DNA of 64,000 bases from Macrostomum lignano (GCA_002269645.1 NIVC01000261.1:1-64000); one strand, 5' to 3'. Positions 504-32,554 are shown, counted from the first letter of the stretch. Notes: generated by a model from the letters alone, not told the origin. Numbers and translations are program-made.

Positions 504-1368
504 ATGAATCGTTACGGTATGCTTGTTCGGGCCCTGCTGCCTGCTCAGCCTGCTGTCCGTCGTGTCGGCGTCTGCGTCCGCTTCCGCATCGTCTGCGGTT
601 GCGCCGGAAACGTGACCGACCTGTTTCAGGTTAACGGAGTTCGAGACCCTCGCGTCTGCTCTGTGGAGTGCGCAGTGCGACCCAACTGCACGCCGCGTGT
701 TCAAGCGAGACGGCACTTGCTATCTGGCCACTGCCGCTCAGTATGAGGCGCTGTGGAGACCCCTGACTGCATCAGCGAGGTCAGTCGGTATCTCTTGCCT
801 TGTGATTCAATTGTTTTTGGATAATTTTTGCAGCAAAAAAGCAAAAGTGCGTGCTGGGGTAATGCAAAATATTCTCCCTGCAAATAAAACAATCTCTATA
901 AAACAAGTTGAGATGTCGGAAATGTTTCAGCCAATTTCACTCATTTTTAGGTCGTTGAGGATCGGCTTCTATCCAACATTACTGAGGAAAAAAGTTTCGA
1001 GACTGACACTGCTCCAGCTTCAACCACTGCTCCAGCCTCAACCACTGCTCCAGCCTTAACCACTGCTCCAGCCTCATCCACTGCTCCAGCCTCAACCACT
1101 GCTCCAGCCTTAACCACTGCTCCAACCTCAACCACTGCTCCAGCCTCAACCACTGCTCCAGCCTCATCCACTGCTCGCCTCAACAACAGCCTCATCTGCT
1201 CCAGCCTCAGCCACTGCTCCAGCCTCATCCACTGCTCCAGCCTCAACCACTGTTCCAGCCTCAACTACTGCTCTAACAACAGCTGACACTGCTCTAACAA
1301 CAGCTGACACTGCTCCAACAACAGCTGACACTGCTCCAACAACAGCTGACACTTCTCGAACGCTTTGA
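504..1368 (+). pseudogene. Family A copy A1 (secreted PAN-like + Thr/Ala/Pro-rich mucin tail), multiply frameshifted
   Basis: Exon 1 is 504-779 (GT at 780) and exon 2 is 951-1368 (AG at 949-950). It is clearly homologous to intact copies A3/A5 (CSVECAVRPNC...CYLAT) but has several 1-nt indels in exon 1 and a 2-nt deletion at ~1176 in the 18-bp TTAPAS repeat. The C-terminal Cys domain is absent. Errors in the assembly consensus cannot be excluded. Confidence 0.75.
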
Positions 1369-1696
1369 GAATAAAGTCTCAGTAGAATTTGATGCATGGA
1401 AATGACTGAAGTCTCGGTAACCTTATATTTATTATACCTTTTAAACGCTTTTTAACAGAATATGCATGCGCAGTTTTACATGCACAGGCCTACGCGGAAG
1501 ATTAGCAATGTCTATTGACCATAATCAAAGGGACCTGCGTAAAGCTGAGTTTGTAACAATAAAATTGAAATTGATTTTTAAGGAATTTGTTAACAAAACA
1601 GGTTATGATCCAAACCGTATCAAAATACCGATAGTGTCGCTGGATGTTTCTGGGACTTCTAGTCATTGCTTTTTCCCCCAAGATTTCAGGCAATCA

Positions 1697-1770
1697 GCAT
1701 GGGGGTAGAGCAGTTAAACCTGACACTTAAACCGCGACCCCTGGTTCGATTCCGTGAGCGGCGGTCACTC
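1697..1770 (+). mobile_element. Possible degenerate tRNA-derived SINE head
   Basis: A box-B-like GGTTCGATTCC lies at ~1743-1753 with a weak box-A-like TGGGGGTAGAGCAG upstream. No cloverleaf was established. Confidence 0.3.
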
Positions 1771-2422
1771 TCATTTGGGACTTGTGTGCACGAAATTTGG
1801 CCGGAAGATTGTCATGCTATCCACACCTACGACGGACAAGCCGCCATGGCACAGAAAGTGTACATGTCTGACGATTAGAAAGTCAGGACCGCTGTACACC
1901 CTGTGTGAGCGTGTGCAAGAGTGAGTGCCTTTGAACAGTATTGGCGCTCTTGTTTGTTCTCAGGAGTCAGCGGAATGGGTAAATTTGCCGTCAGAGCTGG
2001 TTGTGGGACGATGCCACCGAGGACGTTGCTCCAGAATGCCAGCAGCCACTTGCAAGTACTATCATTGCTATTTCCACCAAGGCGCACGTTCAGCAAAAGT
2101 GAAAAAAACTCGGTCAGTTTCCAAGTCTTTATTTTAATTGGGTTTTAAGCAAACAAAGTTGCAGAAATCGGTTTCAAAGACTGGAATCACAAGAAATCAA
2201 AGCGTCATGGTTTGTGAATTGACTGGCTTTGAATTGACTCGCTCGATGATGGCCCTCGATGCATTTCTGGTGTACCTAAAGCTCATGATTCAGAAGAAAA
2301 AGCCTCCAGAAAATCTTCGCTATGTTGTTTCTGTTGCCTGACAACAAGAACTTTCACTGTGCTTCTTTCTCAAGATTCCTCTTTGTGTGAGCTCGGTCGA
2401 ACAACTTGAGTAGAAAGATGCA

Positions 2423-29046: not shown

Positions 29047-29647
29047 ATGTTTATAAAAACTGCCTGCTGCCTGCTCAGCCTGCTGTCCATCGCATCCGGT
29101 GTCTGCGTCCGCTTCCGCGTCGTCTCCGGTTGCCCCGGAAACGTGACCGACCTGTCGCAGGTCAACGGAGTCCGAGACCCTCGCGCCTGCTCGGTGGAGT
29201 GCGCAGTGCGACCCAACTGCACCGCCGTGTTCAAGCGAGACGGCACTTGCTATCTGGCCACTGCCGCTCAGTATGAGGCGCTGTGGAGACCCCTGGACTG
29301 CCGCAGCGAGGTCAGTCGGTGCTCAATACACCAGTAAAATTAAACTTATCCATAAGTGCCCTTCATTGTTGTTAAGAACCTTTTCGTTGATTGTTGCACC
29401 CACTCAGGTGGTGGAAGGAAGACTGGTCAACACGACTTCACCTCCGAACTCTGGTGCTGACATGAGCACCACCAGAAGCTCCGTCTGCTTCACAGATGGC
29501 CAGGCGTGCACCATCGACTTCATGAGAGACTGCAGCAGCGATGTGCACTACCTGCGCTGCAATCATGGAGCCTACGTTCAGATGCCGTGCTCAGCTGGCA
29601 CATCCTATTCCGCTGGCACATCCTATTCCGCTGGCACCTGTCCATGA
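29047..29647 (+). CDS. Family A copy A5, intact 167-aa secreted PAN-like + CBM14-like protein
   Basis: Exons are 29047-29310 and 29408-29647 (phase 0, GT-AG). It has a signal peptide, PAN core, short linker and Cys domain with a tandemly duplicated AGTSYS. Confidence 0.85.
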
Positions 29648-30844
29648 GGATGCCCACCACTGAAGACAATCTAACCAAACCAAACCGATTTGAAGCTATC
29701 AGATGTTCAGAGCTTTTGAAGATAAGATATGCCTGCTTGAAGGAACTCGCACTTTAATAAAGGACACGTCCAAAATTAACTATACTTATAATTAGTAATA
29801 TTTGGTACAGCATGTTAATGCGCTTGCTTTGTTATTTCAAATAGATTTTGTTTGTTATGCTAAGTTTGAAAGCGAACAATCAAATTTTATAAAGCCTGCA
29901 CAGAATACTCAGACTTGTCCCTTTACAAGTATTCATGTGGCCTAATGATTTGTTGTTTGGATTGTGGATATTTATCGGGATAAATTTTTGGTTAGAAAGG
30001 TGCTTGCAAATCCGAATTGTTAGGAACTGTGACTGGGGAAACTGGCGTTTTTTATGAGGGGGCTTGAGTAAAGGAAATAATCGCTAAGGCGGGCTGAAGA
30101 GGCGTGAGTTGTGATCCCTTTGTGTGTTTTATGTTCTCCTATCACAAAAAGAAGGTAAGAAAGACAAGTTTGTCACCAATTCCAAAGGCTGAGCCCTGAG
30201 AGAGAGCCCTGAGCTGCATCCAAGATGGTAGTTTATGCAGCAGCATTGAACAAAATTTTTATCGAGACGTTTTTCACCTCTCAAGGCTTTTTTCACGAAA
30301 TTTTCACAGAAATTTCCCGTAGTAGAATTTTTATTGTGAAAAACTCAAATAAAACACGTTTTCCCTATAAATTTGCCTTGTTAAAGTCAGGGGCACCTCT
30401 TGTTTGCAGGTGTGGCCAGGAAATTTATTTTTAAAGGATCCATTCTTGAGATGAAAATTTATTCACTTTAAAATATTTTTTGCAGAATAGGCGGGTTCAT
30501 TTCCTTATAGCAGGTGTTGGTTTGCCTCATTAGAGTTTTTGTACCTCCAGCGATGTTAAGTAGTATACACGGATAACAATAAAGTGTAAATTTAGCAAAC
30601 AATAAAATTCAGTATGCAAACTATTTAGCTTACTTAACTACTATTAGTAAATGATACGAGCGAAGCTGCCTATTTCAAATACAGCTCAACTGAATGCTCT
30701 ACATGTGATTTGATTGGCTGGATTAATCCTGCCGATACTACACTGCAGATAGAAAAAGTAAAACTATAAAAGCTTAGAAAATTCCCTTTAACTTTATTAC
30801 TCATATGCTCAGTTTGAAGAGCTCTCTGAACTCTCTCTCCGATA

Positions 30845-32554
30845 ATGCTCATTTATAAAGCCGCTGTGTCCTTGCTGGTTGCTGGGTCAGCCTGCTGCCT
30901 CCTGAGCCTCCTGTCCGAAGCAGCCGGTCTCACCGTCCAGCTGACCATCGTAGCCGGCTGTCCGGACAACCTGACCCTGTTTAGCCGGGTGTCCGGGGTT
31001 CGAGACCCGCGCGCCTGCTCAGTGGAGTGCGCGATACGGCCGAACTGTAGCGCCGTTTACAAACAGAACAGCGTCTGCTACTTCGCAGTTGGGGAGCAGT
31101 ACCCCCTGTTGTGGACTGGCGGCGGCTGCAGCAGCGAAGTGAGCTAGTTGGTTAATCAGTCAGTTAGTTTGTTTGTTAGTTAGTTGGTTAGTTAGTTAGT
31201 TAGTTAGTTAGTTAGTTAGTCAGTTAATCAGTTAGTCAGTTAGTTAGTCAGTTAGTTAGTTAGTTAGTCAGTTAGTTAGTCAGTTAGTTAGTTAGTTAGT
31301 TAATTAGTTAGTCAGTTAGTTAGTTAGTTAGTTAGTTAGTCAGTTAGTTAGTTAGTCAGTTAGTCAGTCAGTTAGTTAGTTAGTTAGTTAGTCAGTTAGT
31401 TAGTTAGTTAGTCAGTTAGTCAGTTAGTTAGTTAGTTAGTTAGTTAGTTAGTTAGTCAGTTAGTCAGTTAGTTAGTCAGTTAGTTAGTTAGTTAGTTAGT
31501 TAGTCAGTTAGTTAGTTAGTCAGTTAGTTAGTTAGTCAGTTAGTTAGTTAGTTAGTCAGTTAGTTAGTTAGTTAGTCAGTTAGTCAGTTAGTTAGTTAGT
31601 TAGTTAGTTAGTTAGTTAGTCAGTTAGTTAGTTAGTTAGTCAGTTAGTCAGTTAGTTAGTTAGTTAGTTAGTCAGTTAGTCAGTTAGTTAGTTAGTTAGT
31701 CAGTTAGTCAGTTAGTTAGTTAGTTAGTTAGTTAGTTAGTTAGTCAGTTAGTTAGTTAGTTAGTCAGTTAGTCAGTTAGTTAGTTAGTTAGTTAGTTAGT
31801 TAGTCAGTTAGTCAGTTAGTTAGTTAGTTAGTTAGTTAGTCAGTTAAACAGTTAGTCAGTTAGTTAGTCAGTTAGTTAGTTAGTTAGTCAGTCAGTTAGT
31901 CAGTCAGTTAGTTAGTTAGTTAGTTAGTTAGTTAGTTAGTTAGTTAGTTAGTTAGTTAGTTAGTCAGTTAGTTAGTTAGTTAGTTAGTTAGTCAGTTAGT
32001 CAGTTAGTTAGTTAGTTAGTCAGTTAGTTAGTTAGTTAGTTAGTTAGTTAGTTAGTCAGTTAGTCAGTTAGTTAGTTAGTTAGTTAGTTAGTTAGTCAGT
32101 TAAACAGTTAGTCAGTTAGTTAGTCAGTTAGTTAGTTAGTTAGTTAGTCAGTTAGTCAGTTAGTTAGTTAGTTAGTTAGTTAGTCAGTTAGTTAGTTAGT
32201 TAGTTAGTTAGTCAGTCAGTCAGTTAGTTAGTTAGTTAGTCAGTTAGTTAGTTATTCGGTGAGTTAGATAGTTAGTTAGTGACTAACTGTGACCAATGTA
32301 TATCAGTACATTTTGAGACTGTAACTCAGGAACTGCCCAAGTACAGTCACGTGCATGCCCACTGCATCCCGCAGGCTGTGCGAGGAAGGCTGACCTGCTC
32401 GTTTCCCAACGACAACTGCACCGGCATGCCAGCAGCCCGCAAGCACTGCACAAAGAATCTTCACTACCTGACCTGTCTGGGAACAAACGTCTATGCCGAG
32501 ATGCCCTGCGCTAACGGCACATCGCGCAACGCCAACACCTGCCCGCCTCCGTGA
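30845..32554 (+). CDS. Family A copy A6, divergent intact ~157-aa PAN-like + CBM14-like protein without spacer
   Basis: Exon 1 is 30845-31138 (GT at 31139). Exon 2 is 32375-32554 (CCGCAG|GCTGTG; AVRGRL aligns with VVEGRL of A5). An alternative in-frame acceptor at 32329 is possible. Confidence 0.8.
31147..32282. repeat. (GTTA/GTCA)n microsatellite filling the A6 intron
   Basis: Direct reading, ~1.1 kb. Confidence 0.97.

Follow-up and report, generated by a model that had tools for sequence, protein, structure and literature searches.

To our knowledge, the only function established for the glycine-rich domain (GRD) is cytokine binding in the receptors ALK and LTK. It is represented structurally by the ALK/LTK domain (PF12810; 7LRZ, 7NX1 and 7NWZ) and by SCD-2 of C. 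elegans (7LIR). PAN/Apple domains (for example, the N-domains of HGF and plasminogen, the apple domains of factor XI, and apicomplexan microneme lectins such as SML-2) have a C-x3-C pair on a helix, then a C-x-hydrophobic strand and, further on, C-x-L. The CBM14 (peritrophin-A) domain is found, for example, in Patella vulgata chondroitin proteoglycan-2, which carries eight CBM_14 domains. Here we describe an array in the flatworm Macrostomum lignano in which genes for two families of predicted secreted proteins are interspersed: family A, which ends in a CBM14-type domain, and family B, which ends in an ALK/LTK-type GRD. The array lies in the first half of a 64,000-nucleotide stretch ('the window'; GCA_002269645.1 NIVC01000261.1:1-64000), which is eukaryotic, has a GC content of 43% and is rich in micro- and minisatellites. 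Spliced translations are 87-100% identical to M. lignano entries in UniProt.

The GRD of family B is homologous to that of ALK/LTK (E = 8e-12), is modelled with the same fold and contains, as they do, several runs of five to seven glycines. In contrast to these receptors, the intact protein B3 is a predicted secreted protein of 400 amino acids, led by a PAN-like domain and without an EGF-like, transmembrane or kinase region. Both families share the cysteine arrangement of PAN/Apple domains described above, and family A also has the Apple-type outer pair of N- to C-terminal cysteines. However, neither has a Pfam PAN match that reaches threshold, and indications of the fold are weak in B, while in A it is putative. 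The C-terminal domain of A is homologous to those of the Patella protein (E = 7e-27) and shares the peritrophin-A cysteine and aromatic pattern (...DC..F.QC..G.Y....C..GT.WS....C). Unlike the Patella protein, an A protein has a single CBM14, placed after an Apple-like domain and a Ser/Thr linker, and single A proteins score at or just under the Pfam CBM_14 cut-off. We are confident of the structural and evolutionary account of the array given below, and consider the overall account, that of a birth-and-death tandem array of A and B secreted-protein genes, to be probable.

Layout of the array and its duplicated unit

Array elements were mapped by BLASTN comparison of the window with itself and by TBLASTN with exon translations. 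Nine family-A pieces and three family-B pieces, linked by two recurring flanks, were located at positions 533-32554. An earlier reading of this stretch, made by a model without database searches (the sequence-only reading), had listed six A copies, three A fragments and three B copies together with two series of shared flanks; both the inventory and the flanks were recovered. The elements, with their strand, are as follows:

533-789 (+), A1, pseudogene consisting of an exon-1 copy only (BLASTN/TBLASTN)
3130-4039 (-), A2, pseudogene; exon-1 copy at 4039-3791 with exon 1 at 4039-3801, CBM14 exon remnant at 3231-3130
5371-5439 (+), family-A exon-1 fragment of 69 nt (BLASTN/TBLASTN)
8278-9777 (+), B1 gene; exons 8278-8320, 8426-8773, 8882-9202 and 9291-9777
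9937-10347 (+), flank B, downstream of B genes; other copies at 16313-16607, 24334-24745 and 27547-27719
13507-14171 (+), A3 gene, intact, 184 amino acids; exons 13507-13776 and 13887-14171
14368-14800 (+), flank A, downstream of A genes; other copies at 27067-27512 and 29991-30303
15515-16009 (+), B2, a 3' fragment with the last glycine-rich-domain exon only (TBLASTN)
17839-17947 (+), family-A exon-1 fragment of 109 nt (BLASTN)
19135-19203 (+), family-A exon-1 fragment of 69 nt (TBLASTN)
22583-24064 (+), B3 gene, intact, 400 amino acids; exons 22583-22625, 22724-23071, 23165-23485 and 23574-24064
24745-25691 (+), A5, 5'-truncated; exon-1 part at 24745-24904
27067-27719 (+), flank A and flank B in almost direct contact (flank mapping)
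29047-29647 (+), A6 gene, intact, 167 amino acids; exons 29047-29310 and 29408-29647
30845-32554 (+), A7 gene, intact but divergent, 157 amino acids; exons 30845-31138 and 32375-32554

Repeat matches within the array have E-values down to 1e-100 and below, which is far beyond chance, and the copies diverge by 4-30%. Flank A at 14368-14800 is 83.5% identical to 27067-27512 and 67-75% identical to 29991-30303. Flank B at 9937-10347 is 96% identical to 24334-24745, and a part of it (10098-10276) is 71-77% identical to 16452-16607 and 27547-27719. Neither flank recurs in the remaining 31 kb of the window. There is also a larger duplicated block, in which 5317-10347 matches 19081-24745; the 69-nt A fragment at 5371-5439 sits within its first part (5317-6427, with its counterpart at 19081-20156).

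A putative ancestral unit of the form A-flank A-B-flank B, repeatedly duplicated and then eroded, is supported because A3, flank A, B2 and flank B follow each other in this order, because flank A and flank B are joined almost directly at 27067-27719, because B3 is followed by flank B and A5, and because the block at 5317-10347 is duplicated at 19081-24745. Such a unit had also been proposed in the sequence-only reading, and both the self-comparison and the flank mapping bear it out. The near-direct junction of the two flanks is the scar of a unit that lost its A and B genes. The duplicated unit would have been about 5-6 kb long, with two unrelated neighbouring genes, and would have given rise to a birth-and-death tandem array whose units were eroded by deletions, truncations and frameshifts. 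To judge from these sequence comparisons, the adjacency of A and B reflects co-duplication and not a shared shuffled exon.

Tandem repeats are also found between the elements: an (ATCT)n stretch of about 317 units (19996-21262) upstream of B3, a 23-bp minisatellite (6967-7712; 32 copies at 94%) upstream of B1 and a 40-bp minisatellite (16877-17568; 17 copies at 94%) between the flank B of B2 and the A fragment at 17.8 kb.

Intact reading frames with GT/AG introns are present only in A3, A6, A7 and B3. The intact A genes have two exons separated by a phase 0 GT/AG intron. In A3, exon 1 encodes the signal peptide and the Apple-like domain, and exon 2 the Ser/Thr linker and CBM14. A6 is 99% identical to UniProt A0A1I8GKV4, and the product of the A7 model is identical to A0A1I8GJG2; the 1.2-kb intron of A7 is almost wholly a (TAGT)n microsatellite of about 1.1 kb (31138-32280). 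In B3, where all three introns are in phase 1, exon 22583-22625 encodes the start of the signal peptide, exon 22724-23071 the PAN-like domain and exons 23165-23485 and 23574-24064 the glycine-rich domain of ALK/LTK type.

The remaining copies are damaged to different degrees. B1 matches B3 exon for exon (94-96% identity; synonymous divergence, dS, 0.065; ratio of nonsynonymous divergence, dN, to dS, 0.53), and is damaged only by the loss of one nucleotide from a C-run at about position 9386 (CCC in B1, CCCC in B2). No B exons were found upstream of B2 using TBLASTN with exon translations. A1 is 93.9% identical to exon 1 of A6, and carries four indels (at 566, 691, 694 and 765) with which its translation shifts frame, while A2 has an 8-nt deletion in exon 1 and an in-frame stop in the CBM14 remnant of exon 2. 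A5 had been treated as intact in the sequence-only reading but has lost its start, signal peptide and splice acceptor. It is cut at the junction with flank B (24745), so that the ATG, the signal peptide and the cysteine that comes first in the Apple domain are missing, and exon 2 no longer has an in-frame acceptor AG. Between its linker and CBM14 core (25203-25519), a 21-nt unit that codes for a mucin-type repeat (TSATAPT-like) occurs about 15 times, in contrast to A3, in which the linker is unexpanded. The long open frame of A5 crosses this repeat, which is open in all three frames. From the state of their reading frames, functional products may still come from three A genes (A3, A6 and A7) and from one or two B genes (B3 and perhaps B1).

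The two proteins and their relatives

Hydrophobic leaders of the signal-peptide type can be read in both A3 (MFSLLEAACCLLSLLSVASG) and B3 (MAEQCLSLKLAFLFVFCSLVLRVQG) and, in agreement with the sequence-only reading, both families are predicted to be secreted.

The C-terminus of B is a complete ALK/LTK glycine-rich domain (a TNF-like part and a polyglycine-II lattice). B3 alone scores 18.3 bits against PF12810, under the cut-off of 24.5, while a close relative (P0019) scores 24.8 bits, and database matches of B3, including one which is 100% identical over the shared region (P0003), carry PF12810. A profile of the B family matches the ALK, LTK and SCD-2 structures in the PDB with E-values of 8e-12 to 5e-7. 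The structure was modelled with AlphaFold2 (AF2) on a paralogue (P0001) 87% identical to B3. The model has a predicted local distance difference test score (pLDDT) of 75.9 overall and 81-94 over most of the GRD. The top 21 Foldseek matches of the model are all ALK/LTK (probability 1.0, E-values 8e-11 to 2e-6), with TM-scores of 0.46-0.59 when normalised by target length. The stop codon of B3 (24062-24064) lies 30 residues past the GRD; EGF-like, transmembrane and kinase parts are all absent, as is any exon homology beyond 24064. B3 is not a receptor, since the protein ends so soon after the domain.

The A proteins (about 160-185 amino acids) consist of a signal peptide, a six-cysteine Apple/PAN-like domain, a Ser/Thr/Pro linker, which is likely to be a site of O-glycosylation, and one CBM14. 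In Pfam, A3 scores 21.8 bits with CBM_14 (cut-off 22.1) and 21.2 bits with CBM_19 (cut-off 20.1). When a family-A profile was searched against 1.84 billion representative sequences (50%-identity clusters), it matched proteins with 6-15 CBM_14 domains at E-values of 7e-27 to 3e-7. By these matches the C-terminus of A can be assigned as a true CBM14 (peritrophin-A) homologue. The two heads named in the sequence-only reading, chitin-binding-like in A and ALK/LTK glycine-rich in B, are therefore both upheld by the profile searches and, for B, by the structural comparison.

The N-termini are less clear. UniProt calls relatives of both A and B 'Apple domain-containing protein', a name which we assume to reflect a PROSITE profile. 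In A the cysteine core is C50-x3-C54-x5-C60-x9-C70, and C30 and C87 form the outer pair typical of Apple domains; in B it is C64-x3-C68-x4-C73-x11-C85. Pfam matches of the A N-terminus are all below threshold: PAN_1 (15.1 bits, cut-off 21.4, E = 0.021), PAN_3 (14.1 bits, cut-off 21.1, E = 0.044) and KIAA0319_N (E = 0.011). There is no Pfam PAN match for the B N-terminus, and the profiles of the two N-domains have no PAN matches among PDB sequences. An AF2 model of family A (P0146, 12 alignment rows) is unusable, with a pLDDT of 42.6. The B N-domain of the P0001 model (pLDDT 55-80) has weak Foldseek matches (E about 1) to the N-domain of HGF NK1 (probability 0.63-0.84) and to the SML-2 lectin. 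Thus, of the PAN-type N-termini proposed in the sequence-only reading, the C-x3-C-x4/5-C...C core stands in both families, in line with the UniProt names, but the Pfam scores and the A model do not carry the assignment further.

That reading had also taken the two N-termini for one PAN module with interchangeable C-terminal heads, built by exon shuffling. The A and B N-domains give no BLASTP alignment; with hhalign their cysteine cores fall in register, at a probability of 5-14% (P = 0.002-0.009). The exon layout differs too: exon 1 of A encodes both the signal peptide and PAN and has a phase 0 end, while the PAN exon of B has phase 1 introns on both sides and comes after a leader exon of 43 nt. 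Exon swapping between A and B is unsupported because there is no BLASTP similarity and the intron phases differ. The two N-domains are at most distant members of the PAN superfamily.

Such modularity does exist elsewhere. Among the 1.84 billion representatives, the A-type N-terminal module is found in only two other 50%-identity clusters at E<1e-3. M. lignano BOX15_Mlig013932g1 (A0A267DNP4), also predicted to be secreted, shares this module, but its head is Laminin_G_3 (a concanavalin-A-like lectin) instead of CBM14, and it is encoded by a single exon at an unrelated locus. Its alignment with a relative (P0134) extends into the Laminin_G_3 region, although P0134 has no direct Pfam match of its own. 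Conversely, the GRD paralogues of M. lignano have N-termini that are PAN-like of the B type, EF-hand or other.

The pairing found in B is not confined to this locus and also occurs in stony corals. Porites and Stylophora have secreted proteins with PAN_1 and a GRD, and so do Pocillopora and Acropora, in which EGF repeats are added (examples are Porites harrisoni ABFA07_017308, Stylophora pistillata AWC38_SpisGene21703, annotated as 'loricrin-like', and a Pocillopora verrucosa 'lysozyme-like protein'). Like B, they have a signal peptide, an N-terminal PAN, a C-terminal GRD and no kinase, and their GRD is 44-46% identical to that of B3. In Porites and Stylophora, the first exon encodes PAN and a separate one the GRD; the coral GRD is a single exon, unlike that of B3. 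The coral proteins also differ from B in exceeding the Pfam PAN_1 threshold and in having an extra COLFI-like segment, sometimes with EGF_CA repeats, between PAN and GRD. The coral PAN is marginally similar to the N-terminus of B (hhalign P = 0.006). In the literature that could be searched, we found neither these M. lignano genes nor PAN-GRD proteins without a kinase described.

Many GRD-only proteins of about 300 amino acids, 42-52% identical to the B3 GRD, are also present in metagenome assemblies. A bacterial origin for these was considered and rejected: the one contig examined (P0036; ENA ERZ25878582, 4.8 Mb) is gene-sparse, with an HTH_animal neighbour, and looks eukaryotic. The GRD gene on this contig has a single exon.

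Unequal divergence along the A genes

All A copies have in common a repeat tract, about 257 bp long, whose extent matches that of exon 1. Among A1, A2, A3, A5, A6 and the 17.8-kb fragment, pseudogenes included, its identity is 88-97%, compared with 67-84% for the flanks of the array. The rest of the gene behaves differently. Between A3 and A6, exon 1 has a dS of 0.06, whereas there is no detectable nucleotide similarity in the intron or in exon 2. Between A3 and A5, exon 1 together with the linker has a dS of about 0.10 and identity in the intron is 84%, but in the CBM14 core the proportion of synonymous differences (pS) reaches 0.73, with a dN of 0.53. In general, apart from cysteines and aromatic residues, CBM14 cores are only 31-52% identical between A copies, with saturated synonymous sites (pS 0.63-0.86). 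Wherever dS can be estimated, dN is smaller, with a ratio of about 0.2-0.5. The GC content at third codon positions is 0.76-0.78 in exon 1, compared with 0.44 in exon 2 of A3, which is compatible with GC-biased conversion but not decisive.

Judging from these alignments, the pattern fits old CBM14 lineages combined with a homogenised 5' part. The exon-1 tract would have been homogenised by gene conversion or unequal exchange, with each copy retaining its old and distinct CBM14 core. The sequence-only reading had called the system 'rapidly evolving' and asked for dN/dS across paralogues. Since synonymous sites in CBM14 are saturated and dN is smaller than dS, the comparison speaks for old divergence with 5' gene conversion rather than for demonstrated positive selection.

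A different view of the same data is that A is a diversifying effector family (seminal-fluid, adhesive or defence), in which positive selection acts on the CBM14 head while the leader/Apple exon stays conserved, in the manner of conotoxin-type gene families. These are indeed small, secreted, cysteine-rich proteins in a tandem cluster, with a highly conserved exon 1 and CBM14 cores that share little apart from cysteines and aromatics (31-52% identity). We nevertheless judge this to be unlikely: the saturation and the ratios just given leave positive selection on CBM14 unsupported, and the introns of A3 and A6 are as unalignable as their second exons, which fits the older divergence and 5' conversion that we prefer.

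Possible functions, competing explanations and the rest of the window

Both A and B would be soluble extracellular binding proteins. A could act as a bridging lectin in which CBM14 tethers the protein to chitin or GlcNAc-rich glycans and the Apple-like domain reaches a second partner, the two being joined by the probably O-glycosylated linker; it would suit a mucus, gut-lining or egg-envelope matrix. B would present its GRD as a soluble ligand-binding or scaffold module. This functional account is a tentative one, in which we place somewhat less than even confidence.

A further-reaching proposal is that A and B form a coupled, co-regulated two-component recognition system, secreted by the same gland or epithelial cells towards the same target. 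This is essentially the model of the sequence-only reading minus the shared exon. The two genes were co-duplicated as one unit and lie in the same orientation, and both products are predicted to be secreted and have PAN-like N-termini. However, co-duplication of neighbours requires no functional link, the ratio of intact copies is unbalanced (three A to one or two B), and some units have lost B without matching loss of A (A6-flank A-A7). In addition, the self-comparison reveals no upstream or promoter similarity between A and B, and an A-type relative elsewhere (P0129) has no GRD gene within 10 kb. Coupling is therefore improbable in our view. It is less probable still that the array is an assembly artefact, in which haplotypes or homeologues of a polyploid genome full of repeats were wrongly joined. 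Repeats do abound in M. lignano assemblies, there are many near-identical UniProt models of these genes, and the lesion in B1 is a homopolymer indel, typical of long-read errors. Yet the array copies are not assembly duplicates, because they diverge by 4-30%; they also have distinct junctions and truncations, A2 is inverted, and the flank A-flank B scar and the differing microsatellites are unlike collapsed or duplicated haplotypes. A birth-and-death array of two unrelated secreted-protein genes remains the account that we prefer.

A number of points weigh against parts of this account. The PAN fold of A is tentative, given the low pLDDT of its model and the sub-threshold Pfam PAN scores. Its chitin binding is predicted, and we found no evidence in the literature on whether M. 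lignano makes chitin. For a GRD outside a receptor, we know of no function. The low dS of exon 1, for which each comparison covers only about 38-70 synonymous sites, could partly reflect constraint at the nucleotide level instead of conversion. The C-run deletion in B1 may be a real lesion or a long-read or assembly error, and even the intact copies may be silent.

In many respects the locus is ordinary: its domains are known, its genes are automatically annotated in UniProt, and it is a typical lineage-specific and largely decayed birth-and-death cluster. Less ordinary are the PAN-GRD architecture without a kinase, which corals have as well, and homogenisation confined to one exon in genes whose CBM14 domains diverged long ago. 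The A genes provide a compact example of exon-limited gene conversion next to old domain divergence. A secreted, kinase-less PAN-GRD family, expanded in a flatworm and also present in corals, could reveal the role of the GRD before its incorporation into a receptor. RNA interference and transgenesis are feasible in M. lignano, which makes such a role testable. One could go further and suppose that PAN-led, soluble, kinase-less GRD proteins are an old and unstudied metazoan family and a possible source of the ALK/LTK ectodomain, and that the M. lignano cassette with its Apple-CBM14 genes is a 'constant plus variable' repertoire for glycan recognition, in which gene conversion keeps the leader/Apple exon while diverged CBM14 heads are preserved. 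This is speculative, and we think it quite improbable.

Several other features were observed in the window. A nuclear hormone receptor gene lies on the minus strand at 37283-40298, with a zf-C4 DNA-binding exon (39816-40298, E = 3.7e-10) and a ligand-binding-domain exon (37283-37801, E = 1.5e-10), between which there are a 40-bp minisatellite (37891-38966) and a 26-bp array (39533-39911). At 60102-62735 (+), an open reading frame (ORF) of 422 amino acids without a Pfam match precedes a second ORF, which has a zf-MYND finger at its end (E = 8e-11) and may represent a ZMYND10-type gene. Between and inside the two lies a tandem array with periods of 33/65/98 bp (61474-62404) that is open in several frames. 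Long regular satellites with a strong strand composition skew occupy 40309-41934, 42392-43337, 44917-47095 and 47348-47730. They include a 35-bp unit repeated 47 times (96% identity) and a 37-bp unit repeated 59 times (98%), and their long ORFs are repeat artefacts. Finally, a 103-bp inverted repeat (4947-5049 and 35186-35287, 94% identity), whose arms are 30 kb apart, may be a short dispersed element.

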